Sequence record: NC_019405.1
Length of the DNA: 64,000 nt
Reading direction: 5' to 3' (one strand)
The translations under genes and the position numbers were made by a program. The notes below the pieces were generated by a model. It saw only the letters and a program-made list of their open reading frames with translations. It ran no database searches and was not told the DNA's origin. Of this stretch, positions 18,459-62,011 are shown in pieces (position 1 is the first letter of the stretch; the number at the start of each line of letters is the position of its first letter).

Positions 18459-18518
18459 GCTGTCGTGAGGGAGCTTGTACGGACTCATGCCGATGCTGTC
18501 AACACTCTAACGCCAACA
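18459..18518 (-). promoter_or_regulatory. phage promoter cassette (upstream-operator type)
   Basis: TGTTGGCG-TTAGA-GTGTTGACA-17-TACAAG then ACGACAGCG; GANTC in the spacer. Confidence 0.85.
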
Positions 18519-18526
18519 AAGAATCG

Positions 18527-18847
18527 CTAGGCCGCGTCCTCGGGCGCCATTTCGAGCGTCAGGGTGTACATGTCGTCGACGCCGATCGCCGGCTCGATCC
18601 CGACGATCACGCAGGTCCTGATCTTGCCGCTCTGGGCCTCGTAGATCACCGTGTCGTCCAGGCGCGGACCTTGGCAGTGAACCATCACGCTGGCCCGGTC
18701 GATCAGCAGGGACTTCCTGAACCATCCGCGCTTGACCTTGCGCGGCGGCGCGATCTTGAACGTGCTGGCGTGGAGCGCGTGTCCCCAGCCCTGCTTGGCG
18801 GGCCGGAAGTCGAAGGTGCGCGGGGCTTTATCGAGGCGCAGGAGCAT
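18527..18847 (-). CDS. hypothetical protein (106 aa)
   Basis: AGGA SD, codon bias. Confidence 0.7.
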   Translation of the reverse strand: MLLRLDKAPRTFDFRPAKQGWGHALHASTFKIAPPRKVKRGWFRKSLLIDRASVMVHCQGPRLDDTVIYEAQSGKIRTCVIVGIEPAIGVDDMYTLTLEMAPEDAA

Positions 18848-19055
18848 GGTGGTCCTTTTCCAGAGTGCGGCGCTCCAGGCGCCTGTGGCCGATGAAGGTG
18901 ATCATGTCCTTGGCCTGGACACGCGTGGGCATATAGCCTCCGAACCGCCGCTGGAGCGGGATGCGCCGGTACTTGGCGTCGAACTTCCAGCGCCAGCGCC
19001 ACGCGTCGGGGTTCTGCCGCGCGAGGAGGGCGAAGACGAAGGACGGCGGGATCAT
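18828..19055 (-). CDS. hypothetical basic protein (75 aa)
   Basis: ATGA overlap with the upstream gene. Confidence 0.6.
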   Translation of the reverse strand: MIPPSFVFALLARQNPDAWRWRWKFDAKYRRIPLQRRFGGYMPTRVQAKDMITFIGHRRLERRTLEKDHHAPAPR

Positions 19056-19297
19056 GGATTGTCTCCCGAGAGGACCGAGAAGGTCGCCACCGGCGTCTTG
19101 CCATCCAGCGGATGACCCAGGATCAGTTCGGGGTCCTCGTCGCCCTCGCGGTCCTTCCAGACCACCTTGCCGTGATAGGTCATGACGCCGGCCGGGAGGT
19201 TCTGGCTGACCAGCCGCAGGGTCTCGGCATAGACATGGGTCCAGTCGAATGGGTTCACCTGGGCCGGATTGTTGGTCACGCTGACGATCAAGGGCAT
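19052..19297 (-). CDS. hypothetical protein (81 aa)
   Basis: ATG 19297 overlaps the upstream stop. Confidence 0.7.
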   Translation of the reverse strand: MPLIVSVTNNPAQVNPFDWTHVYAETLRLVSQNLPAGVMTYHGKVVWKDREGDEDPELILGHPLDGKTPVATFSVLSGDNP

Positions 19298-19818
19298 CAG
19301 GAGGTCGAGCCTTTCAGATGGGTGTGGCCGCGATGGAACATGGTGGCGGCCTGCTTTTCGGTCCGGCACGGCCCGAACCACAGGCTGTCGCCCTGGCGGC
19401 GGGCGGCGATCCCGTATTCCCGCCGGGGCTCTTCGAGATAGGGGAGCGTCGTCAGGGCGCTCAGGACCTCGTAGGGCGTCTCGTCCGCCTCGATCTGGTC
19501 GTCGGTCACGGCGATGTAGAAATAGAGGTCGCGATCGGCCAGACCTAGCGGCGACTTGGCCCGGAACGAGCGGAAGCTCGACCAGAACCAGCCTCGCCGC
19601 ATCTCCAGGCCCCGACGGACGCCGAGCAAGCCCTCCTGGGTCTCGCCCTCGGGCCAGCACCCGAGGATCGAGGCGCTATAGGTCGCGCCCTCGGGCTCGC
19701 CGAGGTCGGCGCGGACAGCCGTCATGGCGATCGCCTTGGCCTCTTCCTCGTCGGCCGCCGCGATCTCGATCTCGGTGACCAGGGACTGGGAGACCTTGAC
19801 CAGGAACCGCTCAGTCAC
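19297..19818 (-). CDS. hypothetical protein (173 aa)
   Basis: N-terminal EIAAADEEEAKAIA motif. Confidence 0.7.
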   Translation of the reverse strand: MTERFLVKVSQSLVTEIEIAAADEEEAKAIAMTAVRADLGEPEGATYSASILGCWPEGETQEGLLGVRRGLEMRRGWFWSSFRSFRAKSPLGLADRDLYFYIAVTDDQIEADETPYEVLSALTTLPYLEEPRREYGIAARRQGDSLWFGPCRTEKQAATMFHRGHTHLKGSTS

Positions 19819-20503
19819 GGAGACCTGCGAGTTGGAACGCCGTGGCGCCGACGGCCGCCGCCAGTTCTTGCTTGAGGTGCTCGACGTCCTCCTTCAATTC
19901 CTTGAAGTAGGGCGTGTCGGCGAGCAGGTCCTGCATTTTCCAGGCCAGGGTGTAGGCCCGGTGGACATAGCTCGTCGGATCGTCCTCGACCATCTTGACG
20001 ACGTCGATCGCCTTCAGTTCGATCAGGCCCTCGGGACCCTTGATGAACACCACGTCATGCGGCTCGATGATCCGAACGCCGCCCGAGGCGAGGTTCTTCA
20101 GGACACGCTCGCGGTGCTCGCAGTGGTCGACCACGCCGATCTCGCCGCGCAGGGCGTGCGGCGGGTTGTGGGTCACCATGACGACCCGATCGCCCGGCTG
20201 GAACGCCCAGCGCACTTCGGGGTCGTTGAGGTGGTCGTCGACCATCTGTCGGATCGTCGCCAGGGAAGTGTGGCCGTAGCAGTCGCCGTGGAGGACGTAG
20301 TGGATGATCTTCCACTCCTTCTCGGTCGGCATCGGGACTTCCTTCCCGTCGCCGTCGCGGCCGTGATAGTAGGCCGCCGTGCCCAGGCGATGGATGAGTT
20401 CGAAGGGCTCGCCCTCGTCGGTGACCTCCGGATGCTCGTCGAGCAACGCGATCATCTTGGCGAGGCTGTAGGTGAGCGGTCGGGTGGCGGGGCGCTGGGT
20501 CAC
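19811..20503 (-). CDS. hypothetical protein (230 aa) with KOW/SH3-like segment
   Basis: FQPGDRVVMV...RGEIGVVD. Confidence 0.75.
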   Translation of the reverse strand: MTQRPATRPLTYSLAKMIALLDEHPEVTDEGEPFELIHRLGTAAYYHGRDGDGKEVPMPTEKEWKIIHYVLHGDCYGHTSLATIRQMVDDHLNDPEVRWAFQPGDRVVMVTHNPPHALRGEIGVVDHCEHRERVLKNLASGGVRIIEPHDVVFIKGPEGLIELKAIDVVKMVEDDPTSYVHRAYTLAWKMQDLLADTPYFKELKEDVEHLKQELAAAVGATAFQLAGLRD

Positions 20504-20981
20504 AGGTGCTTCTCCAGGCCCAGGTCGTCGATCACCGCCTGGGCGATCGCTTCCAGATTGAAGTGGCCGTCGATGACCGTGTCCTGCGCATCGTCGGCGT
20601 CGACATAGTTGGACGGCGTCGGCGCCGGGGCTTCCAGGATCGCACGCTTCAGGGCGTCGGCCAGGATGACCGCCGGGGTCCGCTTGACCTTGGCCTTCTT
20701 GACCTTCCAGTTGAGGTCCTGGAGGCGCACGACGCGGCGATCGCCATCGACGATCTCCTTGAAGGCGCCGGCCTTGATCAGTCGCTCGACCGTGTCGTCG
20801 CTGAAATGCGGGTTGGCCTCATCGACCGGGGCAGATCGAGTTGGGCGTCGATCCACTGCTGCTCGCTCATATAGGGCTGGTGGCGCGCCGTGGCGCGGAT
20901 GCCGTATTGTAGACGCTTGTCGTAGAGGGTGAGGCGCAGGCCGGCATGGTCGCGCTCGATCCAGATGTCAGGCCGCTGCAT
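20500..20981 (-). pseudogene. gene split by an apparent 1-nt deletion at 20828-20831 (or sequencing error)
   Basis: Codon bias switches frame at CTGCCCCGG; adding one C fuses both track ORFs into 160 aa. Confidence 0.65.
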
Positions 20982-21999
20982 CGGCGACCTCCTCGGCCTC
21001 TTCCTCGCTCGGGGCGATCGTCGAGCCCGAGTATTCCTGAAGGTGATCGACCGCCTTCTGGGCCAGCGACGCGGCGGTGAAGATGAAGCGCTTGTCGCCC
21101 TTCAGGACCTTCAGCCAGGAGGCGACATAGGAGGCGTGATCCTCACGGACTTCCGGGGTCAACCCAAGAATGGCGCAGAGGAAGGCCGAGCCCAGTTCGG
21201 CGACCAGTTCCTCGGCGGCGTAGGCCTCGTCCCCGAAGCGCTTGCCGAACTCGCGGTTCAGGCGGTCCTCGCGACCGGTCCAGTGGACGAACTCGTGGCC
21301 GAGGGTGGCGTAGTAGCTCTCCTCGTCGCGGAAGGCGTCGAACTGGGGCATCTGGATGAAGTCCAGGTGCGGCGAGAAGAAGGCCCGATGGCCGCCGTGG
21401 CGCACCTCGGCGCCCGTGGCGGCGAAGAACTTCTCGACCGCCGCGTTGCGCTCCAGGACCCGCTTGGCTTCCTCGGCGGGCGTCGCCGGGGCCGGGGCGG
21501 GCTTCTGGTAGAAGCGCTCGGGCAGGCCGTCGATCTGCTCGACGTTGAACACCAGATAGGACTTCAGGAACGGGATCATCCGCTCGACGTCCTTGCCGTT
21601 GGCGTCCTTCTCGGTCTTCTTGAACTTCGAGGCGTAGACGATCAGTTCGGACTTCTCGCCCTTGCGGACCTGACCACCCAGGTCCCTGGCTTGGTTGTAG
21701 GTCATCCAGGTCGGGTTGGTGTAGCCGCGCTCCTGGGCGGCGGCCCACAGGAGGACCACGTTGATCCCGGTGTAGCGCTGGCCGGTCACCCGGCGGGGAT
21801 AGATCGCCATGCCGGCCGAGGCGCCGCCGGGAGCCGACCACGGCTTCAACCAGGGACGCACGCCAGCGTCGAGGGCGGTGATGATCTTGTCGGTGATCTT
21901 CTGATAGAGGTCGACCTTGACGGTTTCGGTCGAGGCCTTGCCGGTCTCCTTGGTGGAGCGCTTGGCCGGCTTCTTCTTGGCGGCGGTGGTCTTGGTCAT
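20968..21999 (-). CDS. ardC: ArdC antirestriction protein (ssDNA-binding plus zincin domain)
   Basis: ITDKII..L..GV.PW.KPW, Y.GINV..LW, W.TY.QA..LGG.VRKGEK, VFN.EQ, HEFVHWTG...RL.R, YA.EEL.AE. Confidence 0.95.
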   Translation of the reverse strand: MTKTTAAKKKPAKRSTKETGKASTETVKVDLYQKITDKIITALDAGVRPWLKPWSAPGGASAGMAIYPRRVTGQRYTGINVVLLWAAAQERGYTNPTWMTYNQARDLGGQVRKGEKSELIVYASKFKKTEKDANGKDVERMIPFLKSYLVFNVEQIDGLPERFYQKPAPAPATPAEEAKRVLERNAAVEKFFAATGAEVRHGGHRAFFSPHLDFIQMPQFDAFRDEESYYATLGHEFVHWTGREDRLNREFGKRFGDEAYAAEELVAELGSAFLCAILGLTPEVREDHASYVASWLKVLKGDKRFIFTAASLAQKAVDHLQEYSGSTIAPSEEEAEEVADAAA

Positions 22000-22010
22000 C
22001 AGGGCCTCCT

Positions 22011-22067
22011 CGTTGTCGTCGAGGGGTTCTAGCCGGCGACCGCGACCTTGTCAACACTCTCGCGCCA
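22011..22067 (-). promoter_or_regulatory. phage promoter cassette driving ardC
   Basis: TGGCG-CGAGA-GTGTTGACA-17-TAGAAC then CGACGACAACG and GAGGAGG SD. Confidence 0.9.
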
Positions 22068-22265
22068 GTTCTTAATCGCTTGGCGTTCCGCGAAGGTGGG
22101 CTGGCGCTCCCAGCAGGCATACTGCTCCGAGCCTCGGGTACAGTTCTCACGGATGATCTCGCCATCCGCGTTGTGCAGCGGCGTGTAGGGCTTCTTCATG
22201 CAGTGCCCGAGATACTGCCCCACCCAGGGGTGCCAGAGGCGGCAGTTGCCGCAGACCTGCCTCAT
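22029..22265 (-). CDS. small Cys-rich protein (78 aa)
   Basis: CGNC..W...HC...C...YAC; its stop TAG is the promoter -10. Confidence 0.7.
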   Translation of the reverse strand: MRQVCGNCRLWHPWVGQYLGHCMKKPYTPLHNADGEIIRENCTRGSEQYACWERQPTFAERQAIKNWRESVDKVAVAG

Positions 22266-22503
22266 CAGGCGCTCATTATCGCCGCGCAGAGGATCATCAC
22301 CACCAGCCCGCCGACGATCGGGCAGACGATCAGCGACATGCAGAACGTCAAGGTCGGGTGGTCGATGAAATAGAACAGGTAGGGAGGCGGTTGGGGCTGG
22401 TTATAGAGAACGGCCGCGCCCAGCGCCAGCGCGATGGCGCCGATGATCCAGCCAGTCCATACCAGAAGGCGCCCTGGAGAAGCGTTTCGACTTTCGGGTT
22501 CAT
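22265..22503 (-). pseudogene. small membrane protein gene with an apparent 1-nt deletion at 22452-22453 (or sequencing error)
   Basis: MNPKVETLLQGAFWYGL then -1 frame WIIGAIALALG...MSA*; adding one G gives 79 aa coupled to both neighbours; absent from track. Confidence 0.65.
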
Positions 22504-22820
22504 CGGCGGTTGTTCTCCAGGTCCCAGATGCGGTTGCGCAGTTGGCGGATGGTCTCTTCCAGGTCGCGGACCTTGCGATAATGCTGGTCCTCGGTCTCCT
22601 GGGTGTTGCGCTTGTAGCGCCGCTCCCGCTCGTCCATCTCCGTCTGGAGCGGATTGGGGATCACGTCATGACCGTGGGCCATGCCGTAGTTCTCGAACGA
22701 GCCCTCGATCCCCTCGGCGATCCCCTGGCGCTTTTCCAGTGGGATGCCGTTCCAGAGGTCAAAGAGGCCTTCGGCGTCAAACGAGGCGTCCAGGCTTTCG
22801 AGCCAGTAATCAGTCGCCAT
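22500..22820 (-). CDS. hypothetical protein (106 aa, coiled C-terminus)
   Basis: Coupled ORF. Confidence 0.75.
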   Translation of the reverse strand: MATDYWLESLDASFDAEGLFDLWNGIPLEKRQGIAEGIEGSFENYGMAHGHDVIPNPLQTEMDERERRYKRNTQETEDQHYRKVRDLEETIRQLRNRIWDLENNRR

Positions 22821-23193
22821 GATGCACGCCCTCCCCGGCCCGGACGCATTGGATCGGGCCTCCGTCGCCCTCTTCGGTGTAGCGCACGAGACTGCCGGCC
22901 TTGATCAGCATCTGGACCGTCTCGTCGCTGACCGTAACGTCGCGCCCCGGCGGGCTCCAGGAGCGGCCGTCATCCATCAGGATCAGACCTTCGCGCCGGA
23001 TCGCCAGGGACATCGCCTGGGCCGCGCGCTGGGCGGCGCTGGTCGCGCCCTCGACCAGGACCTTGAGGTCCTCGATCGGGAAGCACTCCAGGAACCGAGT
23101 GCGGACCTCCAGGCGCTCGGCCGGCGGCAGGCGCATGATGTCGCCCACCAGGATGTCGGCGTACTCCTCGGCGGTCTTGGGGGCGTCGGTCAT
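22810..23193 (-). CDS. hypothetical protein (127 aa), possible winged-helix C-terminus
   Basis: VSDETVQMLIKAGSL motif. Confidence 0.7.
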   Translation of the reverse strand: MTDAPKTAEEYADILVGDIMRLPPAERLEVRTRFLECFPIEDLKVLVEGATSAAQRAAQAMSLAIRREGLILMDDGRSWSPPGRDVTVSDETVQMLIKAGSLVRYTEEGDGGPIQCVRAGEGVHHGD

Positions 23194-23447
23194 GACTTGA
23201 GGCTCTGGCAGGCGAACGTGATCACGTCGCCGAGGGTGTTGAAATCCTCGGGGAACTGGACCGGCTCAGGGACGGCGAAGTCCTCCTCCAGGCACAGCAT
23301 CAACTCGATGATGTCCAGGCTGTCGAGGCCCAGATCATCTTCCAGCCGTAGCCCCTCGTCCATATCGTCGAGGGTGTACGACCGGTCGGTGATCGCATGG
23401 GCGTAGTCGAAGGTCGCCGCCTTGATCTCGTCGCGCGTGAAGGTCAC
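23190..23447 (-). CDS. acpP: acyl carrier protein
   Basis: EDDLGLDSLDIIELMLCLEEDF phosphopantetheine-attachment motif; acidic 85 aa. Confidence 0.9.
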   Translation of the reverse strand: MTFTRDEIKAATFDYAHAITDRSYTLDDMDEGLRLEDDLGLDSLDIIELMLCLEEDFAVPEPVQFPEDFNTLGDVITFACQSLKS

Positions 23448-24178
23448 GGCTCTCCCCCTGGTGTCGTTTCGGCGCTTCTAGCCCTCCCAAGCAGAGCCGT
23501 CAACACATCAGCGCCACGCCAGACCCAGGATAGGCTCAGAACGAGGTCGCGGTCCTCATAGGCGGCGCTGCGCCCGGTGATCACCTTGATCGCCGAGAGC
23601 GGGCCGAACCGCCAGAAGACGACCGTGCGCGAGTCGTTGCGGCCGGGCAGGTGCTCCAGCAGCACGCGACGCTTGATCGCCAAATGTCGCTGCTCCCTGT
23701 GAAGGACGAGCGCGACCTTGCGCGTCGGGTCAGACCCGAACCACCGGCGCCAGTAGCCCGGATTGTCGATGTTCTCGAACAGCCGGCCGATCCGCTTGCT
23801 GACGGGGCGAAGCCCAGGCTCGCGCCGGCGCACGCTCAGCGGTGGGAAGGTGCAAGGCGGCCACTCCGGAAGCAGGCGCAGGCGCAGCCTCCGGAATTCC
23901 CACGCCGGCATGGCGTTGTCCTTGGTGTTGTTGCACGCCACGCAGGCCGCCGCCAGATTGCTCTCGTGGTTCGATCCGCCCTCGGCCCTAGCCTCCAGGT
24001 GCTCGATCGTCACCTCGTCGGGCTCCAGCTTGCCACCGCCCCGGCCGATCCGCCGGCGATAGGCCATCTGCCCCGTGCAATAGGTGCAGAGGCCACCCGC
24101 CTCCAGGAAGAGGCGGTGGCGGCGGTTCGGAGCGGCGGGCGGTAGCGGGTCCTGGACCAGCACCTCAGATGAGGACAT
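23444..24178 (-). CDS. HNH endonuclease domain protein
   Basis: CTYC, TIEHL..R..GG.N..SNL..AC..CN..K. Confidence 0.85.
   Translation of the reverse strand: MSSSEVLVQDPLPPAAPNRRHRLFLEAGGLCTYCTGQMAYRRRIGRGGGKLEPDEVTIEHLEARAEGGSNHESNLAAACVACNNTKDNAMPAWEFRRLRLRLLPEWPPCTFPPLSVRRREPGLRPVSKRIGRLFENIDNPGYWRRWFGSDPTRKVALVLHREQRHLAIKRRVLLEHLPGRNDSRTVVFWRFGPLSAIKVITGRSAAYEDRDLVLSLSWVWRGADVLTALLGRARSAETTPGGEP
23461..23516 (-). promoter_or_regulatory. phage promoter cassette for the ACP gene, inside the HNH gene
   Basis: TGGCG-CTGAT-GTGTTGACG-17-TAGAAG then ACGACAC. Confidence 0.8.
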
Positions 24179-24611: not shown

Positions 24612-24620
24612 GGTCGATCC

Positions 24621-25356: not shown

Positions 25357-25358
25357 GC

Positions 25359-26673: not shown

Positions 26674-26723
26674 CGTTGTCGTCACCCGCGACACTAGATG
26701 GTCGGAGGTGTGACTGTCAACAC
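26674..26723 (-). promoter_or_regulatory. phage promoter cassette
   Basis: GTGTTGACA-18-TAGTGT then GACGACAACG. Confidence 0.8.
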
Positions 26724-26724
26724 T

Positions 26725-27246
26725 TCACGTCAGAGCTAGACGGTGACGATAGAACAGGCGCCGGCCGTTGAAGAACAGACGGATGCGGAATTCCTCGTCG
26801 AGGGTCCCGATGTCGAGGCTAAGGCCCAGGAGGCCCAGGCTGACATAGGCATGGCGCCCGAAGCTCCCCGGAATGGCGTCCATGCCGCCGGCGACGAACC
26901 GGATGAGCCAGAGCCAGCCCAGGTCGAATCGCTTGAAGCCCTGCCATTCGATCGAGCGCCAGGAGAAGCCGCCGCCCAGCAGGGTGATGTCGATGTCCAG
27001 GTTCCAGCCGTCGGCCAGCGGATCGCGGCGGCGGTGGTAGCGCAGGCGAAAGAAGCCGCCGTCGAGGTCGAAGTTCGGGATCGCGCCAAAGGCCAGACGG
27101 CGCAGACGCGCCAGGACATAGCCGACCGGGAAGATCACCAGGGCGTAGAGACTCAGGAGGAAGACCAGGGCCACGGCGCACCACAGGCCATGCCAGAAGA
27201 ACCCGAGCATCATCCCAAGCTTTGGCGAATGGTCGGGCATGGTCAT
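26725..27246 (-). CDS. membrane protein (173 aa)
   Basis: N-terminal TM segment, Trp/Phe-rich. Confidence 0.7.
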   Translation of the reverse strand: MTMPDHSPKLGMMLGFFWHGLWCAVALVFLLSLYALVIFPVGYVLARLRRLAFGAIPNFDLDGGFFRLRYHRRRDPLADGWNLDIDITLLGGGFSWRSIEWQGFKRFDLGWLWLIRFVAGGMDAIPGSFGRHAYVSLGLLGLSLDIGTLDEEFRIRLFFNGRRLFYRHRLALT

Positions 27247-28185: not shown

Positions 28186-28245
28186 TGTTGTCGTCGAGGA
28201 TGGCTTCTAGCCGGCCCAGGTCAGGTTGTCAACACTCGACAGCCA
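28186..28245 (-). promoter_or_regulatory. phage promoter cassette (upstream-operator type)
   Basis: TGGCT-GTCGA-GTGTTGACA-17-TAGAAG then CGACGACAAC. Confidence 0.9.
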
Positions 28246-28549
28246 AGTAGACGTTTCGGCGCGGCTCATAGGGGAGATCGTTGGCGATCGCCATCAGCCA
28301 GCCGGCGTGGCAGCGCTTGGGAGCGCAGTGGCAGACGAGATGGAAGCCCTTGAAGTTGGCCTTGACCCAGGCGACGAACGCCTCGTCCTTGGACTTCAGG
28401 GCGATGTACTTGTCGATCACCGTGTCGCGATCGCCATCCTGACCGATGCGGAATTCGTTGCCCGCCGGGGTCCCCCGGCCGACGTACTTGGACATCGGCG
28501 GGAGATGGCCTGGGAACTCGCTTCGGCTGAGAACGCGCAGTTCGATCAT
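28229..28549 (-). CDS. DUF4326 family protein
   Basis: YVGRG...GN.F.IG.DG.R..VI.KY, L.C.CAP..CH. Confidence 0.85.
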   Translation of the reverse strand: MIELRVLSRSEFPGHLPPMSKYVGRGTPAGNEFRIGQDGDRDTVIDKYIALKSKDEAFVAWVKANFKGFHLVCHCAPKRCHAGWLMAIANDLPYEPRRNVYLAVEC

Positions 28550-32510: not shown

Positions 32511-32570
32511 GTCGTTGTGTCGACATAAGCTCTAGCCGTGGTTTTCCGGCCTGTCAACACACAACCGCCA
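32511..32570 (-). promoter_or_regulatory. phage promoter cassette (upstream-operator type)
   Basis: TGGCG-GTTGT-GTGTTGACA-17-TAGAGC then CGACACAACGACAG. Confidence 0.85.
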
Positions 32571-32576
32571 AGGGTC

Positions 32577-36178: not shown

Positions 36179-36207
36179 ACCCTAGAGGAGCGTTCGAGTG
36201 TTGACAA
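36179..36207 (-). promoter_or_regulatory. leftward promoter of the divergent switch (spacer-operator type)
   Basis: TTGTCA-ACACTCGAACGCTCCTC(17)-TAGGGT. Confidence 0.65.
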
Positions 36208-36220
36208 GCACCAATGTCGC

Positions 36221-36279
36221 TGGCTTTCGAGTGTTGACAAGTCCGGTGCTCGTCTATAGGGGAGACCGGGACGACAACG
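36221..36279 (+). promoter_or_regulatory. rightward promoter cassette of the divergent switch
   Basis: TGGCT-TTCGA-GTGTTGACA-17-TAGGGG then GACGACAACG. Confidence 0.85.
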
Positions 36280-38493: not shown

Positions 38494-38748
38494 ATGCTGA
38501 CCAAGGACGAGATCACCTTCGCGGGCCTGATCAAGGCCATGGAGGACGCCCGCCGCACCGCCAAGGCGGCGGGCGATCTCGTCAGCACGGCCGAGATCGA
38601 CCGCTGGTTCAAGGAACACGCGCCGATCATCCGGGAGGTCCGCGACAAGGCCGAGGCCGACGAATTCGACGCTGGCGTGAGAGTGTTGACAGCCTCTGAG
38701 GAAGGGGCTAAAGACACCCTCGACGACAGCGAAAGGAGCCTGCCTTGA
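38494..38748 (+). CDS. hypothetical protein (84 aa) whose C-terminus is encoded by a promoter cassette
   Basis: Good bias until GVRVLTASEEGAKDTLDD. Confidence 0.7.
   Translation: MLTKDEITFAGLIKAMEDARRTAKAAGDLVSTAEIDRWFKEHAPIIREVRDKAEADEFDAGVRVLTASEEGAKDTLDDSERSLP
38673..38731 (+). promoter_or_regulatory. phage promoter cassette (upstream-operator type)
   Basis: TGGCG-TGAGA-GTGTTGACA-17-TAAAGA then CGACGACAGCG. Confidence 0.85.
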
Positions 38749-41798: not shown

Positions 41799-41806
41799 GT
41801 CTTTCC

Positions 41807-41865
41807 TGGCGCGAAAGTGTTGACAGCCTGAAGGGACTCCTCTACACCCACGCTCGACGACAACG
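41807..41865 (+). promoter_or_regulatory. phage promoter cassette (upstream-operator type)
   Basis: TGGCG-CGAAA-GTGTTGACA-17-TACACC then CGACGACAACG; GANTC in the spacer. Confidence 0.85.
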
Positions 41866-45598: not shown

Positions 45599-45643
45599 TT
45601 GACAACACTCTCGCGCCAACATAGAACCGCCCTCGACGACAAC
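45599..45643 (+). promoter_or_regulatory. phage promoter cassette (spacer-operator type)
   Basis: TTGACA-ACACTCTCGCGCCAACA-TAGAAC then CGACGACAACG; 28-mer identical to 59481 and 61967. Confidence 0.92.
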
Positions 45644-47098: not shown

Positions 47099-47101
47099 TC
47101 C

Positions 47102-47158
47102 TGGCGTTCTTGTGTTGACAAGGCCGGAGCCGCTGGCCTAGAACGTCGTGGACGACAA
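47102..47158 (+). promoter_or_regulatory. phage promoter cassette (upstream-operator type)
   Basis: TGGCG-TTCTT-GTGTTGACA-18-TAGAAC then GACGACAAC. Confidence 0.85.
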
Positions 47159-54443: not shown

Positions 54444-54447
54444 ATTT

Positions 54448-54507
54448 TGTTGGCGTTAGAACGTTGACAGCCTCGGCGTGATGTCATAAAAGCCTCCTCG
54501 ACGACAA
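54448..54507 (+). promoter_or_regulatory. phage promoter cassette with SD-masking hairpin
   Basis: TGTTGGCG-TTAGA-ACGTTGACA-17-TAAAAG; GCCTCCTCG-ACGACAA-CGAGGAGGC. Confidence 0.88.
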
Positions 54508-54520
54508 CGAGGAGGCCCAC

Positions 54521-55852: not shown

Positions 55853-55853
55853 T

Positions 55854-55912
55854 TGGCGTTCAAGTGTTGCCAAAGCTGATCTGATCAGCTAGAACCCTCG
55901 CCGACGACAACG
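55854..55912 (+). promoter_or_regulatory. phage promoter cassette with palindromic spacer
   Basis: TGGCG-TTCAA-GTGTTGCCA-17-TAGAAC then CGACGACAACG. Confidence 0.8.
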
Positions 55913-55931
55913 CAAGAGGAGCCCCCGAGCC

Positions 55932-56546: not shown

Positions 56547-56547
56547 C

Positions 56548-56865
56548 ATGGGCCTGCTGAGCATCTACCTGACCGGCGCGGCGCTCACCGGCGCGGCGAC
56601 GGCCGTCTATCTCTTCAAGGTCCGGGCTCCGGCGACCAAGGAGACCTACACCACCACCTGGGGCTATGTCGAAACCGACGACGTCAATGAGACCGGCAAC
56701 CACCTGGGGGCGATCCTCCTGATGGCGGTCCTCTGGTTCCTCACCGTCCCGCTCGCGATCGTCATGGGCCTCTGGCATCTCCTGGTCCGCGCCATCGACA
56801 AGGCTTGGCGCCGCTGCACGCCGCGCCGCGAGAAGACGCACGTTGGCACCCATCGCTATCTGTGA
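56548..56865 (+). CDS. membrane protein (105 aa)
   Basis: Two hydrophobic segments. Confidence 0.75.
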   Translation: MGLLSIYLTGAALTGAATAVYLFKVRAPATKETYTTTWGYVETDDVNETGNHLGAILLMAVLWFLTVPLAIVMGLWHLLVRAIDKAWRRCTPRREKTHVGTHRYL

Positions 56866-56881
56866 TCGCCGCCAGCCCGGC

Positions 56882-56923
56882 TGGCTTCAGTGTGTTGACG
56901 GCGCGTCGATCGCCCGCTAAGAA
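56882..56923 (+). promoter_or_regulatory. phage promoter (upstream-operator type, no ACGACAA leader)
   Basis: TGGCT-TCAGT-GTGTTGACG-17-TAAGAA. Confidence 0.75.
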
Positions 56924-56981
56924 GGGCTGACGGTCACGCTCTGGCTGCATGAATTTTCAAGAGACAAAGGGCCTTAAGTCC

Positions 56982-59012
56982 ATGGATTTCCACGTCTTTA
57001 AGACGGCCGTCGCCAAGCAGTGGGCCGCGATGACCAAGGATGACGCGACCCTGTTCCGCGTCGACGTCGACAAGGACCTCCTGTGGTCGACCTACCTGAA
57101 GGCGTTCCCGGCTGGGACCGATCCGATCTTCCGCGAGCGCTCCGAGCACGACTGCTCGTGCTGCCGCAACTTCATCCGCAACGCCGGCGACGCCGTGGCG
57201 GTGGTCAACGGCCAGATCGTGACGATCTGGGATGGCAAGATCGAGGGCGAGCCGGCCTATCAGCAGGTCTCCCAGACCCTGGCGGCGCTGGTCCGCTCGC
57301 GCCCGGTGCGCGACATCTTCCTGCACGACCAGAAGACCATCGGGACCGACAAGAACGTCGAGACCATGCTGGGCGGCGACGTCACCTGGAACCACTTCTT
57401 CGTCAATGTCCCCTCGCGCTTCGTCAAGAAGGGCAAGGACATCCCGACCGCGCTCCACCTCCCGCGCACGGCGCAGGAAACGCTCCTGCGCGCCGTCAAT
57501 GAGATCACCGACGAGGCGATCGACACGGTGCTGGACCTGATCGCCCAGAACGCGCTCTATCGCGGCGCCGAGCACAAGGCGGCGGTGGTGGCGTTCCAGA
57601 AGGCCAAGAAGACCTTCGAGGGCCTGTCGGCCGCCGACAAGGCGCTGAAGGCTTGGGTCAACGTCGCCAGCGGCGAACTCTGGGGCTCGGTCTCGGGCAT
57701 CCGGAGCACGGTGATCGGCTCGCTGCTGGTCGACCTGTCGGCCGATGTCGACCTGGAGGAGGCGGTCAAGAAGTTCGAGGCCAAGGTCGCGCCGTACAAT
57801 TACAAGCGCACGACCGCCCTGGTGACCAAGAAGCAGATCGAGAACGCCAAGAAGACGATCTCCGACCTGGGCCTGACCTCGGCCCTGGAGCGGCGCTACG
57901 CCGTCCTCAAGGACGTGTCGATCAACGACGTGCTGTTCGCCGACCGCGACGCCAAGTCGGTGATGAACGACGTCTTCGACGATCTGGCGGCCGACGTCGC
58001 CGAGAAGACCAAGTCCTATGATAAGGTCGAGGAGGTGTCGATCGACAAGTTCCTGGCCGACATCCTCCCGAGGGTGACGAGCGTCGAGGCCCTGGTCGAG
58101 AACCGCCTGACGAGCAATTTCGTCAGCCTGATCGCGCCGGTCGATCCGACCGCCGGCTCCCTCTTCAAGTGGGGGAATAACTTCTCCTGGTCCTATGCCG
58201 GGGAGGTGGCGGACTCGATCAAGGCCCGCGTCAAGGCGGCCGGCGGCAACGTCACCGGCGATCTCTGCTGCCGTCTGGCGTGGTTCAACTATGACGACCT
58301 CGACTTCCACATGAAGGAGCCGGGCGGCAACCTGATCTACTTCCGCCAGAAGTCCTCGCCCTACACGGGCGGGCGCCTCGACGTCGACATGAACGCCGGC
58401 GGGGGCCATACCCGCGAGCCGGTCGAGAACATCTTCTACGGCGACCGCCGGACGATGAAGGAAGGCGTCTACGAACTGATGGTCCATCAGTACAGCAAGC
58501 GCGAGTCCAGCAACGTCGGCTTCGAGGTGGAGATCGACTACCTGGGCTCGGTCACCCGCTACGCCTACACCACGGCCCTGCGCCAGGAGCAGGTCGTCAA
58601 GGTGGCGCAGTTCAAGTACAGCCACGCGCGCGGCATCGAGTTCATCTCCTCGCTCCCGGCCTCGTCGGCGAGCAAGGACGTCTGGGGCGTGAAGACCGAG
58701 ACCTTCCGCAGGGTCAACGTCATCATGCTCTCGCCCAACCACTGGGAAGGCGAGCCGGGCGTGGGGAACAAGCACTGGTTCTTCATGCTGGACGGAGGCG
58801 TCAACGAGGACGGCGCCCGTGGCTTCTACAACGAGTTCCTGAAGGATAGCCTCACGCCCCACCGTCGCGTCTTCGAGATGCTGGGGTCCAAGCTGAAGCC
58901 CGCGCCGGCGACTGAACAACTCTCCGGCCTGGGCTTCTCCTCGACCAAGCGCGACGAACTCGTCGTGCGCGTCAAGGGGGCCTTCACGCGTACCCTCAAG
59001 ATCAAATTCTAA
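56982..59012 (+). CDS. large phage protein (676 aa; start 56949 possible) with Cys cluster and YfaP/DUF2135-like segment
   Basis: HDCSCCRNF; W.NYDDLDFHM.EP.G...GG.LDVDMNAG...PVENI. Confidence 0.85.
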   Translation: MDFHVFKTAVAKQWAAMTKDDATLFRVDVDKDLLWSTYLKAFPAGTDPIFRERSEHDCSCCRNFIRNAGDAVAVVNGQIVTIWDGKIEGEPAYQQVSQTLAALVRSRPVRDIFLHDQKTIGTDKNVETMLGGDVTWNHFFVNVPSRFVKKGKDIPTALHLPRTAQETLLRAVNEITDEAIDTVLDLIAQNALYRGAEHKAAVVAFQKAKKTFEGLSAADKALKAWVNVASGELWGSVSGIRSTVIGSLLVDLSADVDLEEAVKKFEAKVAPYNYKRTTALVTKKQIENAKKTISDLGLTSALERRYAVLKDVSINDVLFADRDAKSVMNDVFDDLAADVAEKTKSYDKVEEVSIDKFLADILPRVTSVEALVENRLTSNFVSLIAPVDPTAGSLFKWGNNFSWSYAGEVADSIKARVKAAGGNVTGDLCCRLAWFNYDDLDFHMKEPGGNLIYFRQKSSPYTGGRLDVDMNAGGGHTREPVENIFYGDRRTMKEGVYELMVHQYSKRESSNVGFEVEIDYLGSVTRYAYTTALRQEQVVKVAQFKYSHARGIEFISSLPASSASKDVWGVKTETFRRVNVIMLSPNHWEGEPGVGNKHWFFMLDGGVNEDGARGFYNEFLKDSLTPHRRVFEMLGSKLKPAPATEQLSGLGFSSTKRDELVVRVKGAFTRTLKIKF

Positions 59013-59031
59013 CGGAAGGACCTGAAAGACC

Positions 59032-59454
59032 ATGAGCACCGACCTCTTCGAGATCGCCGCGCGCGAGAAGTTCCGCTTCGAAAGCCCCAAGGGCCTCCTG
59101 GGCGTGGAAGAACTGTTCGACCTGCCACTGACCAGCACCGTCGCCGGCAAGGCCAACCTGAACGATATCGCCGTCGACCTGTTCAAGCAGATCAAGGACC
59201 TCGACAACATCTCGTTCGTCACGCCCAAGAAGGTCGACCCCTCGATCGGCCAGCGCCTGGACATCGTCAAGCGGGTGATCGAGATCAAGCAGGCCGAGAA
59301 CGCGGCCAAGCTGAAGACCGCCCAGGACAAGGAGACCCTGCGCATCCTCGACGAGGCGATCGCCGCCAAGAAGTCCGAGAAGATCGCCGGCACCTCGCTG
59401 GAAGACCTCGAAGCCCAGCGCGCGGCCCTGCTCTCGGGCGGCGCCTCCGCCTAA
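59032..59454 (+). CDS. hypothetical protein (140 aa), partner of the preceding gene
   Basis: FE.A.R.K.RF.S.KG....E.L.DLPL motif; coiled C-terminus. Confidence 0.85.
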   Translation: MSTDLFEIAAREKFRFESPKGLLGVEELFDLPLTSTVAGKANLNDIAVDLFKQIKDLDNISFVTPKKVDPSIGQRLDIVKRVIEIKQAENAAKLKTAQDKETLRILDEAIAAKKSEKIAGTSLEDLEAQRAALLSGGASA

Positions 59455-59480
59455 GCCTTCGGGCGGGCTGACATAGGCGC

Positions 59481-59527
59481 TTGACAACACTCTCGCGCCA
59501 ACATAGAAGGGCCTCCGACGACAACGC
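59481..59527 (+). promoter_or_regulatory. phage promoter cassette (spacer-operator type)
   Basis: TTGACA-ACACTCTCGCGCCAACA-TAGAAG then CGACGACAACG. Confidence 0.92.
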
Positions 59528-59541
59528 CGGAGGCCCTTTTT
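59507..59541 (+). terminator. terminator-like hairpin overlapping the start site and SD of the cassette
   Basis: 11-bp perfect stem AAGGGCCTCCG/CGGAGGCCCTT, loop ACGACAACGC, T-tract. Confidence 0.6.
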
Positions 59542-59542
59542 C

Positions 59543-59995
59543 ATGCCTTATCCGATCCAGATCGATCCCATCATCCTCGCCCTCGGCAGCGCCTGGAAGG
59601 CGGCCGACGCCTTGGCGCTCGACCTGCGCCACAAGTGGTCCTGTGTCACCAATGACCGCAGCGCCTACGAGGCCTGGAAGATCGCCGACGACGTCCGCAA
59701 CGCCGCCTTCAAGGCCATGACCTACGCCCTGCCCGATCCGGGCAGGCCGGTGTTCATCAGCCCGACCGACTGGCTGGCCGACAAGGACAACTGGCGCACC
59801 GAGTACGCGCCCGTCCGGGTCTGGAATGGCGCGGACCACTACAAGGACTGGTACCCGTGCCTGGGCCACTACGAGTTCAACGTTCGCACCGGCGAGCGCT
59901 TCTACCGTGGGGCCGAGATGTTCGACCGCTGCGTCGAGGAGGCCGCCCGGCGCAATGCCGAGTACGCGGCATACTACGCCAAGCAGGCCGCATGA
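59543..59995 (+). CDS. hypothetical protein (150 aa)
   Basis: GGAGG SD inside the hairpin. Confidence 0.8.
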   Translation: MPYPIQIDPIILALGSAWKAADALALDLRHKWSCVTNDRSAYEAWKIADDVRNAAFKAMTYALPDPGRPVFISPTDWLADKDNWRTEYAPVRVWNGADHYKDWYPCLGHYEFNVRTGERFYRGAEMFDRCVEEAARRNAEYAAYYAKQAA

Positions 59996-60198
59996 CCGTC
60001 TCGCCCGAACTCGCCGCGCTCCTGGATGAGCAGCCCAAGGACAGCCCTCAAGCGGTCACGGCCTGGATGGCGCGGAAACTGGCCGATCGCCTGATCGTGG
60101 CCGTCCGGACGATGGACCGCCAGTCGGCCGATTACGAAGTCCAAGACGTCGCCGATGACCTGATCAAGCTCGCCAACATCGAAGAGTTCGGCGAATGA
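59992..60198 (+). CDS. hypothetical protein (68 aa)
   Basis: ATGA coupling. Confidence 0.7.
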   Translation: MTVSPELAALLDEQPKDSPQAVTAWMARKLADRLIVAVRTMDRQSADYEVQDVADDLIKLANIEEFGE

Positions 60199-60440
60199 AA
60201 TCCGTCCAGGTCCAGCGCGGCAAGACCACCTACCACGTCACCTTCGACGAGGCTGGGCAGGTCTCGTCGATCATCGGCGTCGCGGTGGTCGGCAAGGTCC
60301 CGCGCTACAAGGGCGGCACGCGCCGCGTCACCTATTCCGGCGCCGGCAACGGCTGGCACGCCAGCGCCGGCCGTCCCATCCCCATGCAGCTTCGCCCGAT
60401 CGCGGACGAGGCGTTCCAGATCAAGGAGGCCCAGACTTGA
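60195..60440 (+). CDS. hypothetical protein (81 aa)
   Basis: Coupled ORF. Confidence 0.7.
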   Translation: MKSVQVQRGKTTYHVTFDEAGQVSSIIGVAVVGKVPRYKGGTRRVTYSGAGNGWHASAGRPIPMQLRPIADEAFQIKEAQT

Positions 60441-61234
60441 GCGAGCTTTCCGCCCCGCACCAGCGGATCGTCAACAACGTGATCGACACGCTGGACCAAC
60501 TCGTCTTTCGCAACGGCAAGCCGCCGATGAGCGGCGAGATGCCCGGCAACATCGCCGACCTCGACAGCATCGCCGACAACATTTCGGCCGTCCTGGCGGC
60601 GCTTCCGAGCAACGCCGATCTGCTGACGAAGTATCTCTTCATCGCGCAAGGGATGTTCCGTTCGCTGGTCAATTACGAGACGGTCTCGCCGGACGAACTG
60701 CGCCGGCTGGCGCATGGCCTGCGCCCGTTCCACGCGATCTCCTCGCGCCGAGGGCTCTCGCAGGGCGCCCAGCAGACCCTCGACTTCATGGTTGAGGGCC
60801 TGCGCTTCCTGGCGGAGAACGACTGCGAGCCCCCGTCAGGCGGCGAGCAGATGTACAACCGCATCTCGCTCCTGAGCCGCACCGGCTCGGACGCCAAGCG
60901 CCTGCGCCAGGAGGCCCCCAGCCTCGCCGTGGTGATCACCCAGGTCGAGGCCCTGTTCATCGACCTGTGGCACTATCGCCCCATCGCCCTGAAGGACGTC
61001 AAGGACGCCTTGGAGGCCCTGGCGCCGTTCCGCACCCCGGTCATCCCGATCGTCGCGACGCCCGCGCCGGCGCCAAAGCCCGCCAGCCGCCCGGTCTCAA
61101 AGGCCGAGGCCCTGGAACTGCTCGACCACATCGCGGTCACGGCCTCCACTCTGCGGATGCAGATGGGGCCGGCCAACGCCGACATCACGCTGGAGCGGAT
61201 CAAGACGCTCGAAGCCTTCGTCAATCAGCAATAG
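60437..61234 (+). CDS. hypothetical helical protein (265 aa)
   Basis: TTG with AAGGAGG SD. Confidence 0.75.
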   Translation: MSELSAPHQRIVNNVIDTLDQLVFRNGKPPMSGEMPGNIADLDSIADNISAVLAALPSNADLLTKYLFIAQGMFRSLVNYETVSPDELRRLAHGLRPFHAISSRRGLSQGAQQTLDFMVEGLRFLAENDCEPPSGGEQMYNRISLLSRTGSDAKRLRQEAPSLAVVITQVEALFIDLWHYRPIALKDVKDALEALAPFRTPVIPIVATPAPAPKPASRPVSKAEALELLDHIAVTASTLRMQMGPANADITLERIKTLEAFVNQQ

Positions 61235-61243
61235 GGGACCAGC

Positions 61244-61693
61244 ATGACCACTCCGCTCTGTCTGAACCCGGACGGCGCCGACTTCCAGGCCCAGGCCGTC
61301 CTCGCCCTGGTCCGCTTCATCATCGGCGACGACTTCGAGCCGTCCTGGAACGCCCAGAAGCAGGTCTTCGAGGGCGAGCCCCAGGTCGCCCGCTTCGATA
61401 GCCCTCGCTGCCACGGCTACGTGATCTGGCTGGTCGATCACCGCGCGGCGGCGTTCGGCGGCGAGGCCCGGCAGATCAACATCACCATCTACCAGCACGG
61501 GGTCAGCGACGAGATCGTGATCAACGCGTGGCTGGGCGAGACCAACCGCTGGATGGTTCCGACCTATCACGACATGCCCGGCCTGGACCTGATGTACAAA
61601 CACGTCACCTTCCGCTGCCTGGACGTCAAGTCGGCCGCCTACTTCGTCACCGACCTGATGCAGGAGTTCTGGGTCCAGGGGACCGGCGCGTGA
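61244..61693 (+). CDS. hypothetical protein (149 aa)
   Basis: Codon bias; GA.FQAQAVLA.VR motif. Confidence 0.75.
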   Translation: MTTPLCLNPDGADFQAQAVLALVRFIIGDDFEPSWNAQKQVFEGEPQVARFDSPRCHGYVIWLVDHRAAAFGGEARQINITIYQHGVSDEIVINAWLGETNRWMVPTYHDMPGLDLMYKHVTFRCLDVKSAAYFVTDLMQEFWVQGTGA

Positions 61694-61992
61694 GCGACCA
61701 CGACGCCTGCCTGACCAACTGGGTCCTCTGTGATGCGCCCGGCGGCGGATTGGTGGTGATCGGCGAGATCATGGCCGACAAGCGCGGGCGATGGCCGGAC
61801 GGGCGGCTCATCCACACCTCGCTCCTCCAGGACAAGGCCGAGGCGGTGGCGCCGGGCGCGGTGATCGCCACGCTCAACTCCCGCTACATCCTGGGTCGCA
61901 AGGCCAAGGAGATCACCGTCCGACACTTCGTCGGGGCGATGCTCGCCCGCGTCGCGATCAGGCCGCTTGACAACACTCTCGCGCCAACATAG
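61690..61992 (+). CDS. hypothetical protein (100 aa)
   Basis: G.I..D.RGRWPDG..IHTS motif; its stop TAG is the promoter -10. Confidence 0.75.
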   Translation: MSDHDACLTNWVLCDAPGGGLVVIGEIMADKRGRWPDGRLIHTSLLQDKAEAVAPGAVIATLNSRYILGRKAKEITVRHFVGAMLARVAIRPLDNTLAPT

Positions 61993-62011
61993 AAGGGTCC
62001 TCGACGACAAC
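61967..62011 (+). promoter_or_regulatory. phage promoter cassette (spacer-operator type)
   Basis: TTGACA-ACACTCTCGCGCCAACA-TAGAAG then CGACGACAACG. Confidence 0.92.

Follow-up and report, generated by a model that had tools for sequence, protein, structure and literature searches.

A 14-base element placed on either side of the -35 hexamer in strong predicted promoters of phage phiCbK and its relatives

Why would a phage place one short sequence upstream of the -35 hexamer in some promoters and, inverted, between the -35 and the -10 in others? The question arises in a 64,000-nt stretch of Caulobacter phage phiCbK (JX100813.1 bases 124001-188000; hereafter the window), where an earlier note had described an operator-like element in two positions and two orientations. 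The element is real: the window contains TGGCK-N5-GTGTTG 15 times without mismatch where 0.03 occurrences would be expected, each touching a -35 hexamer, and a search for the 19-mer CAACACTCTCGCGCCAACA that allowed up to 3 mismatches gave 7 matches where 0.01 would be expected. The sequences that had been quoted for 18500-18518 and 22052-22067, however, are minus-strand reads; the plus strand at these positions is their reverse complement.

The element is bipartite, yTGGC-N4-RWGTG, with the 14-base consensus TTGGCGCGAGAGTG and with conserved positions at -14 to -10 (yTGGC) and -5 to -1 (RWGTG) relative to the hexamer. Scored with a matrix built from the 3 element-bearing phages, a TTGACA-type hexamer follows 14 of the 15 window copies that reach 14 bits or more. 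In the complete phiCbK genome a hexamer is present at 16 of 23 copies of at least 13 bits, and 14 of the 16 hexamer-linked copies lie within 142.5-189.8 kb. A tie between element and promoter is thereby supported. The suggestion that the element is a TGTTG direct repeat did not hold as a definition: TGTTG-N9-TGTTG is found in only 4 of the 15 sites (1 class-1 site and 3 class-2 sites, as defined below), and in none of those of Brevundimonas phage Bajun. The 14-base element is previously undescribed, and stands next to the -35 of ~20 strong predicted promoters in phiCbK and its relatives.

In the first placement (class 1), 12 exact copies point the same way as the local genes and directly adjoin TTGACA on its upstream side, giving the layout GTG-TTGACA, a 17-18 nt spacer and then gcTAGAA. 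The earlier note had counted about 12 upstream cassettes; with degenerate copies included, the class-1 total in the window is 15 (Table 1). In the second placement (class 2) the element is inverted: 3 matches (45603, 59485 and 61971) take up the 17-nt spacer of a promoter whose 28-mer, TTGACAACACTCTCGCGCCAACATAGAA, is the same at all three loci (first bases 45599, 59481 and 61967), just as had been noted. A degenerate version in the leftward promoter at 36179-36207 was also confirmed: there the inverted element keeps its GTG-proximal half intact but has a degenerate distal half.

Table 1. Promoters carrying the element in the window (a slash marks the junction of element and -35 hexamer)
Promoter	Position	Strand	Sequence	Remarks
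Class 1, before gp168	9504..9546	-	CTGGCTGACATGTG, TTGACA, 17 nt, TAGAAG	
Class 1, before gp183	16428..16470	-	GGTGAGCGAAAGTG	Distal element half degenerate; variant also kept in Rogue
Class 1, before gp186	18474..18518	-	TGTTGGCGTTAGAGTG/TTGACA	Top-scoring element, 20.2 bits
Class 1, before gp193 (ArdC-like)	22026..22068	-	CTGGCGCGAGAGTG/TTGACA	16-mer identical to the inverted class-2 copies
Class 1, before gp197 (acyl carrier protein)	23475..23517	-	GTGGCGCTGATGTG/TTGACG	
Class 1, before gp205	26691..26734	-	TCTGACGTGAAGTG	Variant distal half; 18-nt spacer
Class 1, before gp208	28204..28246	-	TTGGCTGTCGAGTG/TTGACA	
Class 1, gp218-gp217-gp216 (tgrL) operon	32529..32571	-	TTGGCGGTTGTGTG/TTGACA	XRE-type half-site CAACC (plus strand) in variable middle of element
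Leftward, gp223 and gp222 (GcrA-like)	36179..36207	-	TTGTCA-ACACTCGAACGCTCCTC-TAGGGT	Class-2 geometry, element half degenerate; layout shared with Rogue and Bajun
Class 1, before gp224	36220..36262	+	CTGGCTTTCGAGTG/TTGACA	Element is 2nd copy of 16-nt direct repeat TTCGAGTGTTGACAAG (36194-36209, 36227-36242)
Class 1, before gp233	38672..38714	+	CTGGCGTGAGAGTG/TTGACA	Within gp232 3' end
Class 1, before gp239	41806..41848	+	CTGGCGCGAAAGTG/TTGACA	
Class 2, before gp245	45599..45627	+	TTGACA-ACACTCTCGCGCCAACA-TAGAAC	Inverted spacer element at 45606-45619; none upstream
Class 1, before gp249	47101..47144	+	CTGGCGTTCTTGTG/TTGACA	18-nt spacer
Class 1, before gp266	54450..54492	+	TTGGCGTTAGAACG/TTGACA	Rogue orthologue (L006:28404) is class 2
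Class 1, before gp270	55853..55895	+	TTGGCGTTCAAGTG/TTGCCA	
Class 1, before gp273	56881..56923	+	CTGGCTTCAGTGTG/TTGACG, 17 nt, TAAGAA	Without the usual leader
Class 2, before gp275	59481..59509	+	Identical 28-mer	
Class 2, before gp281	61967..61995	+	Identical 28-mer	Rogue orthologue (L006:34142) is class 1

The two placements are mirror images about the -35. Read on the bottom strand, a class-2 promoter is TGTTGGCGCGAGAGTG followed by TTGTCAA, a sequence that lines up with class 1 position by position, and the inverted copies match the consensus exactly. TTGACAA is close to palindromic (reverse complement TTGTCAA), so the site can be installed in either mirror orientation with the -35 kept. 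The two placements are alternatives: all 8 class-2 promoters of phiCbK and its sister phage CcrRogue (Rogue) lack an upstream copy. One Bajun promoter (L030:33174) combines an upstream copy with a partial inverted spacer copy, forming a dyad around the -35. Two orthologous genes have exchanged classes between phiCbK and Rogue, gp266 being class 1 and gp281 class 2 in phiCbK, with the reverse in Rogue; such swaps fit equivalent control of the two classes better than opposite control.

The cores are of the host type. The published consensus for Caulobacter RpoD is -35 TTGaCgS and -10 GCtANAWC (PMC8144410). The promoters of the window, which are predicted from sequence, have the corresponding RpoD (sigma-73) form, TTGACA, 17-18 nt and (g)cTAGAA(c/g). 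A scan for E. coli-type promoters found none of them, because their -10 ends in C or G. Other known promoter types were considered and rejected. A sigma-54 promoter (GG-N10-GC; TGGCAC-N5-TTGCW) would need GC ten bases after the GG of TGGC, where these sites have TT, and their closest TTGA is displaced from the required register by 2 bp. An UP element is A/T-rich, lies at -40 to -60 and is bound by the alpha C-terminal domain, whereas this element is G+C-rich (TGGCGCGAGAGTG). A MerR-type spacer operator is dyad-symmetric within an over-long spacer of 19-20 bp; here, an asymmetric element sits in a class-2 spacer of 17 nt. Where transcription relies on an activator that overlaps the -35, that hexamer is usually weak. 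The class-1 cores, by their sequence, would count as near-perfect RpoD promoters needing no activator, and activation is not indicated. A second phiCbK promoter family, outside the window, has its own element directly upstream of TTGACA, with GAATC beside the -35.

Conservation between phages is concentrated on the element. In 9 orthologous class-1 pairs of phiCbK and Rogue, identity is 85% in the element, 78% in the -10, 59% in the spacer and 42% in the far upstream flank. At the gp208 promoter the two phages agree at all 16 nt upstream of the hexamer but at 7 of 17 in the spacer. The class-2 spacers, which contain the element, are 16/17 to 17/17 identical between the two phages. These comparisons indicate that the element is under selection on whichever side of the -35 it occupies. 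Bajun has the same consensus, with 11 sites in 77 kb. In CcrColossus, which infects C. crescentus as phiCbK does, the element is absent from the one 50-kb region searched, where other conserved flanks are found. Among 185,579 species genomes the consensus was found in no host chromosome; the sole Brevundimonas match is on a 210-kb contig, and all homologues of the 433-aa ORF tested from it belong to phages of Brevundimonas and Caulobacter. This distribution suggests that the element goes with the phage lineage, not with the host.

Judged indirectly, from its position-specific conservation, its link to promoters and its distribution among phages, the element is most likely a docking site of a phage regulator. 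The reading we prefer, to which we give a probability of about 0.45, is a composite operator of a phage-lineage protein that most likely represses both classes; the data show the element, its mirror geometry, the selection on it and its distribution among phages, and protein binding, a phage-encoded reader and a negative effect are what we infer. The element (TTGGCGCGAGAGTG) and the -35 hexamer would together make up a composite site of ~20 bp, the element being one half, and the site would belong to a family of strong promoters of the host RpoD type that lie in the small-gene arms of phiCbK. The site would be read by a single sequence-specific DNA-binding protein that is specific to the phage lineage and therefore probably phage-encoded. 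It would reach upstream to ~-49 in class 1 and downstream through the spacer to ~-14 in class 2. Whichever the placement, the protein once bound would overlap the -35 or the spacer and most likely shut the promoter down, so that early transcription would be turned off in the manner of Cro. The mRNA of the tgrL operon peaks at 15 min, the first time point, and then falls, as does that of ~41% of phiCbK genes; this fall of early mRNA does not prove repression.

The earlier note had instead proposed a temporal switch in which the same factor could activate one class and repress or twist the other. On this model class 1 would be activated from ~-42 through contact with sigma region 4 and class 2 repressed in the spacer, with opposite timing. 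A single reader for both placements is supported, by the exact inverted consensus and by selection on either side, but activation of class 1 is not indicated by the near-consensus cores or the class swaps. Established promoter geometry does favor the switch: the class-1 span of -49 to -34 is the classical place of a -35-overlapping activator, and a factor in the class-2 spacer must inhibit the promoter and should block RNA polymerase. The same span is the class-II activator geometry of lambda CI at OR2 on PRM, so activation of class 1 is conceivable. The second promoter family also has its element directly upstream of TTGACA, and the position upstream of that hexamer therefore seems to encode promoter class. 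Against the switch stand the near-consensus cores, genes that change class between sister phages and a tgrL class-1 promoter that is already highly active at 15 min, and we consider it possible but unlikely. An element of intrinsic promoter strength, recognized by the host polymerase or by a general factor of the host, with no phage regulator involved, as with T4 early promoters or the UP element, is improbable. Unmodified host polymerase must fire early promoters, the element is conserved on a par with the -10, and a weak T-rich tract lies just 5' of it (-20 to -13 from the hexamer). Such a role would leave the conserved reverse complement in class-2 spacers unexplained; the element is also G+C-rich where UP elements are not, missing from the searched region of CcrColossus with the same host, present in Bajun with another host genus and absent from host chromosomes.

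An equally slender chance attaches to a regulator centered on sigma region 4, which would recognize the 14-bp element plus the -35 and dock on either side through the near-palindromic TTGACAA. If so, one protein could remodel or appropriate host sigma, approaching it from upstream at one set of promoters and from the spacer side at another, and flipping of the site would be an evolutionary route to rewiring gene timing. Slightly more doubtful is TgrL (gp216), the XRE protein of the phage and an abundant early repressor, as a reader of the CAAC/GTTG motifs of the element. TgrL is early, highly expressed, represses 93% of its direct host targets and is conserved in Rogue, Bajun and Colossus, and its half-site CAACC resembles the CAACA/CAACAC of the element. 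The published ChIP-seq matrix for the operator of TgrL and the Caulobacter XRE proteins RtrA, RtrB, CdxA and CdxB, yn-CAACC-N3-GskNG, nevertheless fits the 15 sites poorly (-2.2 to 7.4 of a possible 18.7 bits). Only the promoter of its own operon, at 7.4 bits, is just over the 99.9th percentile of window positions, the other sites giving -2 to 6 bits. Matrix position 7 nearly excludes the element's A; TgrL sites are inverted half-sites 8 bp apart, whereas the element is asymmetric with no such pair; and Colossus, without the element in the region searched, has TgrL as well. Very improbable, finally, are mobile promoter cassettes spread by recombination with hitch-hiking flanks and no reader, like the promoter-stem-loop cassettes of T4. 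The promoter plus its CGACGACAACG leader is repeated many times, three 28-mers are identical, and one class-2 cassette precedes different genes in phiCbK and Rogue. Hitch-hiking predicts even conservation, yet identity peaks at the 14-nt element, and the same 14-mer is found in Bajun, whose gp239 homologue (the one protein compared) is 37% identical; the conservation data indicate selection on individual element positions.

The remaining binders that had been put forward fared no better than the XRE protein. GANTC, the GcrA/CcrM site, is not enriched at promoters, with 11 sites in 55 promoters of 140 nt, near background and at no fixed position. The TrmB-like winged-helix protein gp268 is distributed among phages in a way that does not fit the element, being present in CcrColossus, where the searched region has none, and found in no Brevundimonas phage, though Bajun has the element. 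The lack of a CtrA match was borne out, TTAA-N7-TTAAC having no match at up to 1 mismatch in the window. Each binder candidate named so far has failed or is indistinguishable.

Several known systems share parts of this arrangement. In lambda, operators of ~17 bp at OR and OL, bound by CI and Cro, overlap the -35 from upstream or cover the core promoter; the same protein represses one promoter and activates another from ~-42, and an early phage protein turns down strong early promoters. The placement at the -35 or core of strong early promoters is alike, but in lambda the operators have dyad symmetry and are gathered in two control regions, whereas the phiCbK site is asymmetric, single, spread over ~20 promoters and used in mirror image about the -35; phiCbK is also virulent. 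OL2 at PL reads TGGCGGTGTTGACA, a resemblance (apart from a 5-bp insertion) that we take as coincidence. The gp71 stoperators of mycobacteriophage L5 are likewise short, asymmetric and present in many copies, in short intergenic regions, mostly in one orientation, with one reader protein, as we propose here. L5 is temperate, unlike phiCbK, and its stoperators lie mostly away from promoters and block elongation, whereas nearly all phiCbK copies are fused to a -35 hexamer. The P22 Arc operator in Pant lies between the -35 and -10 of a strong phage promoter and acts by occlusion, which is the class-2 geometry, but it is symmetric and at one locus, and no ribbon-helix-helix protein was identified in phiCbK. 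The marbox of MarA, SoxS and Rob is an asymmetric site of ~20 bp that occurs in two orientations and at two positions with respect to the -35, and its protein touches two major grooves in succession; TGGC and GTG, being 10 bp apart, would suit a protein of that type. Unlike the phiCbK element, marboxes are degenerate host sites that all lie upstream of or over the -35, all activate, and never occupy the spacer. T4 early promoters and promoter-stem-loop cassettes likewise serve many small early genes, with repeated cassettes, conservation beyond the two hexamers and shuffling from gene to gene, but their extra conservation is A/T-rich and read by polymerase, with no inverted spacer copy.

Some smaller features accompany individual promoters. 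The gp168 promoter has a terminator-like hairpin in its leader, and the gp275 leader (59509-59536) is annotated as a terminator in the record. The stop codon of gp280 is the TAG of the gp281 promoter -10 (61990-61992).

A 12-kb query taken from the window matches Caulobacter phage phiCbK at 100% identity, which places window base 1 at base 124001 of JX100813.1. Genes in the window run leftward to about 36157 and rightward from 36293, and nearly all of them are small and hypothetical. A first reading by sequence alone (the earlier note) had described an operator-like element, TGGCK-N5-GTGTTG, used in two positions and orientations at promoters. Its recurrence holds, with 15 matches in the window against 0.03 expected, and so do the two placements: twelve copies point the same way as the surrounding genes and adjoin the -35 (class 1), and three are inverted (class 2), lying between the -35 and the -10. 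These three form the identical plus-strand 28-mer that had been reported, TTGACA-ACACTCTCGCGCCAACA-TAGAA, whose spacer is 17 nt long and which is followed by the usual leader. A leftward promoter said to bear a degenerate version does have class-2 geometry, with the element half-degenerate. By contrast, the TGTTG direct repeat on which the operator was thought to be built is not general, being present at 4 of 15 window sites and absent from the Brevundimonas phage Bajun. With weaker copies included, the window holds 15 class-1 and 3 class-2 promoters (see table).

Class-1 promoters share a layout of GTG-TTGACA, a spacer of 17-18 nt, (g)cTAGAA(c/g), a conserved leader CGACGACAACG, a Shine-Dalgarno sequence and a start codon. 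Their predicted cores agree with the Caulobacter RpoD consensus, TTGaCgS / GCtANAWC (PMC8144410). An E. coli-type promoter scan of the window returned no sites, because it demands a T at the last -10 position; an Rfam search of the window found no family.

Alignment of 46 class-1 promoters from phiCbK, CcrRogue and Bajun gave the consensus TTGGCGCGAGAGTG. Counted from the hexamer, yTGGC (-14 to -10) and RWGTG (-5 to -1) carry most of the information; these two blocks lie one helical turn apart, with four weakly conserved bases between them. A hexamer (TTGACA, TTGTCA, TTGCCA or TTGACG) follows 14 of the 15 window copies that reach 14 bits. Since the element is hardly ever seen away from a hexamer, the functional unit is a composite of about 20 bp, TTGGCGCGAGAGTGTTGACA. 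The sole high scorer in the window that lacks a hexamer (15.7 bits) falls within gp170, antisense to the coding sequence, and may be a chance match.

On its bottom strand every class-2 promoter reads TGTTGGCGCGAGAGTG followed by TTGTCAA (with 1-2 substitutions in the Rogue copies), which is the class-1 module with one hexamer change. The near self-complementarity of TTGACAA is what permits this mirror placement. The two placements are mutually exclusive: none of the eight class-2 promoters of phiCbK and Rogue has an upstream copy. Class-2 sites do not serve as promoters in the leftward direction, since at all three window sites the bottom strand lacks a TA-type -10 at 16-18 nt past TTGTCA. Operators fused to strong phage early promoters are a familiar kind of feature; what makes this variant unusual is an asymmetric site that is mirrored about the -35 and has been swapped between orthologous promoters.

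Positions of promoters, element copies and leader features (L002-L005, regions of the phiCbK record; L006, CcrRogue; L030, Bajun)
Feature	Position	Strand	Remarks
Class-2 28-mer promoters	window 45599, 59481, 61967	+	
Leftward promoter	window 36179-36207	leftward	
Exact 16-nt repeat TTCGAGTGTTGACAAG	window 36194-36209, 36227-36242		33 bp apart in divergent control region; left copy in leftward promoter, inverted sense; right copy in rightward promoter
tgrL operon promoter, class 1	window 32529-32571 (32552-32571 with CAACC); Rogue L006:7712	- (window)	
gp266 promoter	window 54464		class 1
Rogue gp269 promoter	L006:28404		class 2; orthologue of gp266
gp281 promoter	window 61967	+	class 2
Rogue gp280 promoter	L006:34142		class 1, perfect element; orthologue of gp281
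Class-2 -10 TAG	window 61990-61992		doubles as gp280 stop codon
gp233 promoter	window 38672-38714		within 3' end of gp232
Element copy without hexamer	window 10520-10533	+	
gp021 site	L003:10534-10580 (record 10534-10580, outside window)		possible third arrangement, element forward inside spacer; its 3' end TAAGTG is the -10 of a TTGACA-N17 promoter; just beyond terminal repeat
Bajun dyad	L030:33174		upstream copy plus partial inverted spacer copy around -35
Leader hairpin	window 9476-9503	-	
Leader hairpin	window 59509-59541	+	
Leaders complementary to Shine-Dalgarno region	window 54493-54515, 18450-18473		
Long perfect hairpin	window 62015-62045		leader after class-2 promoter 61967; Rogue counterpart after L006:37512
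Second-family promoters	L003:19456, 22399, 25480, 30468, 33215		
Second-family promoters	L004 and L005 (record 47397-115695)		
Second-family promoter	L002 (record 200179)		

We compared nine orthologous class-1 promoter pairs of phiCbK and Rogue, which belong to different genera. Identity was 100% in the -35 hexamer, 85% in the element, 78% in the -10 hexamer, 65% in the leader, 59% in the spacer and 42% in the far upstream flank. In class-2 pairs the pattern is reversed, the spacer being identical at 16/17 to 17/17 positions and the upstream 16 nt at 3/16. Therefore, selection stays with the element, be it on one side of the -35 or the other, and hitch-hiking in a mobile cassette cannot account for conservation that shifts sides in this way. 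Two orthologous genes have exchanged classes between these phages: gp266 is class 1 in phiCbK and class 2 in Rogue, and gp281 the converse.

The promoters that the element marks belong to the small-gene region, which extends from about 133 to 190 kb of the genome around a divergence point at 160 kb. The whole phiCbK genome holds 16 copies of at least 13 bits with a hexamer, 14 of them at 142.5-189.8 kb. By the same thresholds Rogue has 17 sites in 75 kb, among them five class-2 promoters, one on the leftward arm. Bajun, which infects another host genus, has an unchanged consensus at 11 sites in 77 kb, and its gp239 homologue is only 37% identical to phiCbK gp239. CcrColossus, whose host is C. 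crescentus itself, has no element sites in the 50 kb examined (L038, 190000-239999). Colossus promoters carry conserved flanks of their own, RAGAG-TTGACA-GACGGC and TTGACS-N10-GTTTCT-TTACAA, a pattern that suggests lineage-specific promoter readers on the same host.

A scan for TGGCGNGAGAGTGTTGACA in one genome per species (185,579 bacterial and archaeal species) gave 6 matches, none in a Caulobacter chromosome and, for the element consensus, none in any host chromosome. The single Brevundimonas match, which includes the exact 20-mer, lies on NZ_JBKBMX010000004.1 (210,414 bp), filed under a Brevundimonas metagenome-assembled genome. This contig resembles the genome of a phiCbK-type phage: it is phage-sized, its ORFs lack Pfam families, and the homologues of the one ORF tested (433 aa) all belong to phages of Brevundimonas and Caulobacter. 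A metagenome scan for the 20-mer gave 6 matches, none in a promoter context, consistent with chance. Among viral contigs the class-2 28-mer pattern occurs in phiCbK-like genomes only. These distributions do not support a host regulon, as the consensus is missing from host chromosomes and the Brevundimonas match is on a phage-like contig. Conservation of the element extends over three or more phage genera and two host genera. It tracks phage lineage and not host, which points to a phage-encoded binder over host polymerase or a host factor.

At class 2 a putative protein lying over -31 to -13 must exclude polymerase, so that binding there would be repressive; this step rests on established promoter geometry. 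The class-1 site spans about -49 to -34, compatible with activation or repression alike, and leaves room for the dual switch of the earlier note, in which the same factor would activate one class and repress the other. Such opposite regulation would have orthologous genes in sister phages timed oppositely. Given the class swaps, equivalent regulation of both classes would be the simpler reading, and we consider the dual switch the less probable of the two.

Our tentative preference, at somewhat less than even odds (about 0.45), is a common shut-off operator, through which one putative binder would repress both classes. Repression at class 1 is favored because the near-consensus cores need no activator, because mirror symmetry suits competition for the -35 better than a directional sigma contact, and because orthologous genes swap class. 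It is favored also by published expression data, in which the tgrL operon, a class-1 case, reaches its maximum at 15 min and falls afterwards, a behavior shared by about 41% of phiCbK genes.

The earlier note proposed XRE, GcrA and winged-helix proteins as candidate binders. Its statement that the element does not match the CtrA box stands, with no such box in the window. The published ChIP-seq matrix of the phage XRE protein TgrL (gp216), copied from the paper's S2 table, gives -2 to 6 bits of a possible 18.7 at 14/15 sites. It reaches 7.4 bits at TgrL's own operon promoter, where the element's variable middle reads CAACC, an XRE-type half-site that is identical in Rogue; TgrL may thus regulate its own operon. 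Canonical recognition by the GcrA-like protein (gp222) is not indicated, since GANTC is not enriched at the promoters. The TrmB-like gp268 occurs in Colossus, which lacks the element, and was not found in any Brevundimonas phage, opposite to the element's distribution. A sigma-54 reading of TGGC...TTG is off in spacing by 2 bp. TgrL, the GcrA-like protein, gp148 and gp149 (HTH) all have homologues in Rogue and Bajun, and TgrL and gp148 also in Colossus, so distribution does not discriminate among them. Gp148 (Bajun record label 'motA') belongs to the core of the entire subfamily, Colossus included; it gave weak winged-helix signals only, with no PDB relative found. Pfam and PHROGs searches of gp223 and of genes downstream of class-2 promoters returned no function, and the latter genes have no recognizable domains.

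phiCbK is the standard phage of a major model bacterium, and its transcriptional programme is almost uncharted. Used as a 20-mer bait, the element offers a direct handle on the regulator of the small-gene region. Mirror placement with side-switching orthologues also constitutes an unusual natural experiment in promoter architecture, one that would show whether such a site has the same effect on either side of sigma region 4. None of the motif strings searched occurred in Caulobacter or phage papers of the literature covered. Among the matches listed for GTGTTGACA, none concerned Caulobacter or its phages; this string lies in the lambda PL/OL2 region, a likeness that we treat as coincidence. 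The phiCbK genome paper mentions promoters a single time.

A second promoter family of phiCbK is absent from the window; its sites, about 18 in number, fall in the structural, lysis and replication modules. They read TGTC-GTGAATC followed by TTGACA, so that a GANTC methylation site directly abuts the -35; their -10 is poor, and in many cases GTTAACCA lies downstream. The phage GcrA-like protein and CcrM-type methylation may be required for their activity.

In some window leaders, the bases between the -10 and the predicted start are complementary to the Shine-Dalgarno region (CCTCG...CGAGG). A general leader hairpin was rejected, as it is strong in only 5/17 leaders. Two leaders have a terminator-like hairpin followed by a T run, one of them annotated as a terminator. 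A promoter-started transcript would lack the 5' arm, and folding with termination would be confined to read-through transcripts. TGTCCGAAATTTGT...ACAGATTTCGGACA, a long hairpin with perfect pairing, has no Rfam match and is kept in Rogue, where its cassette stands before another gene.
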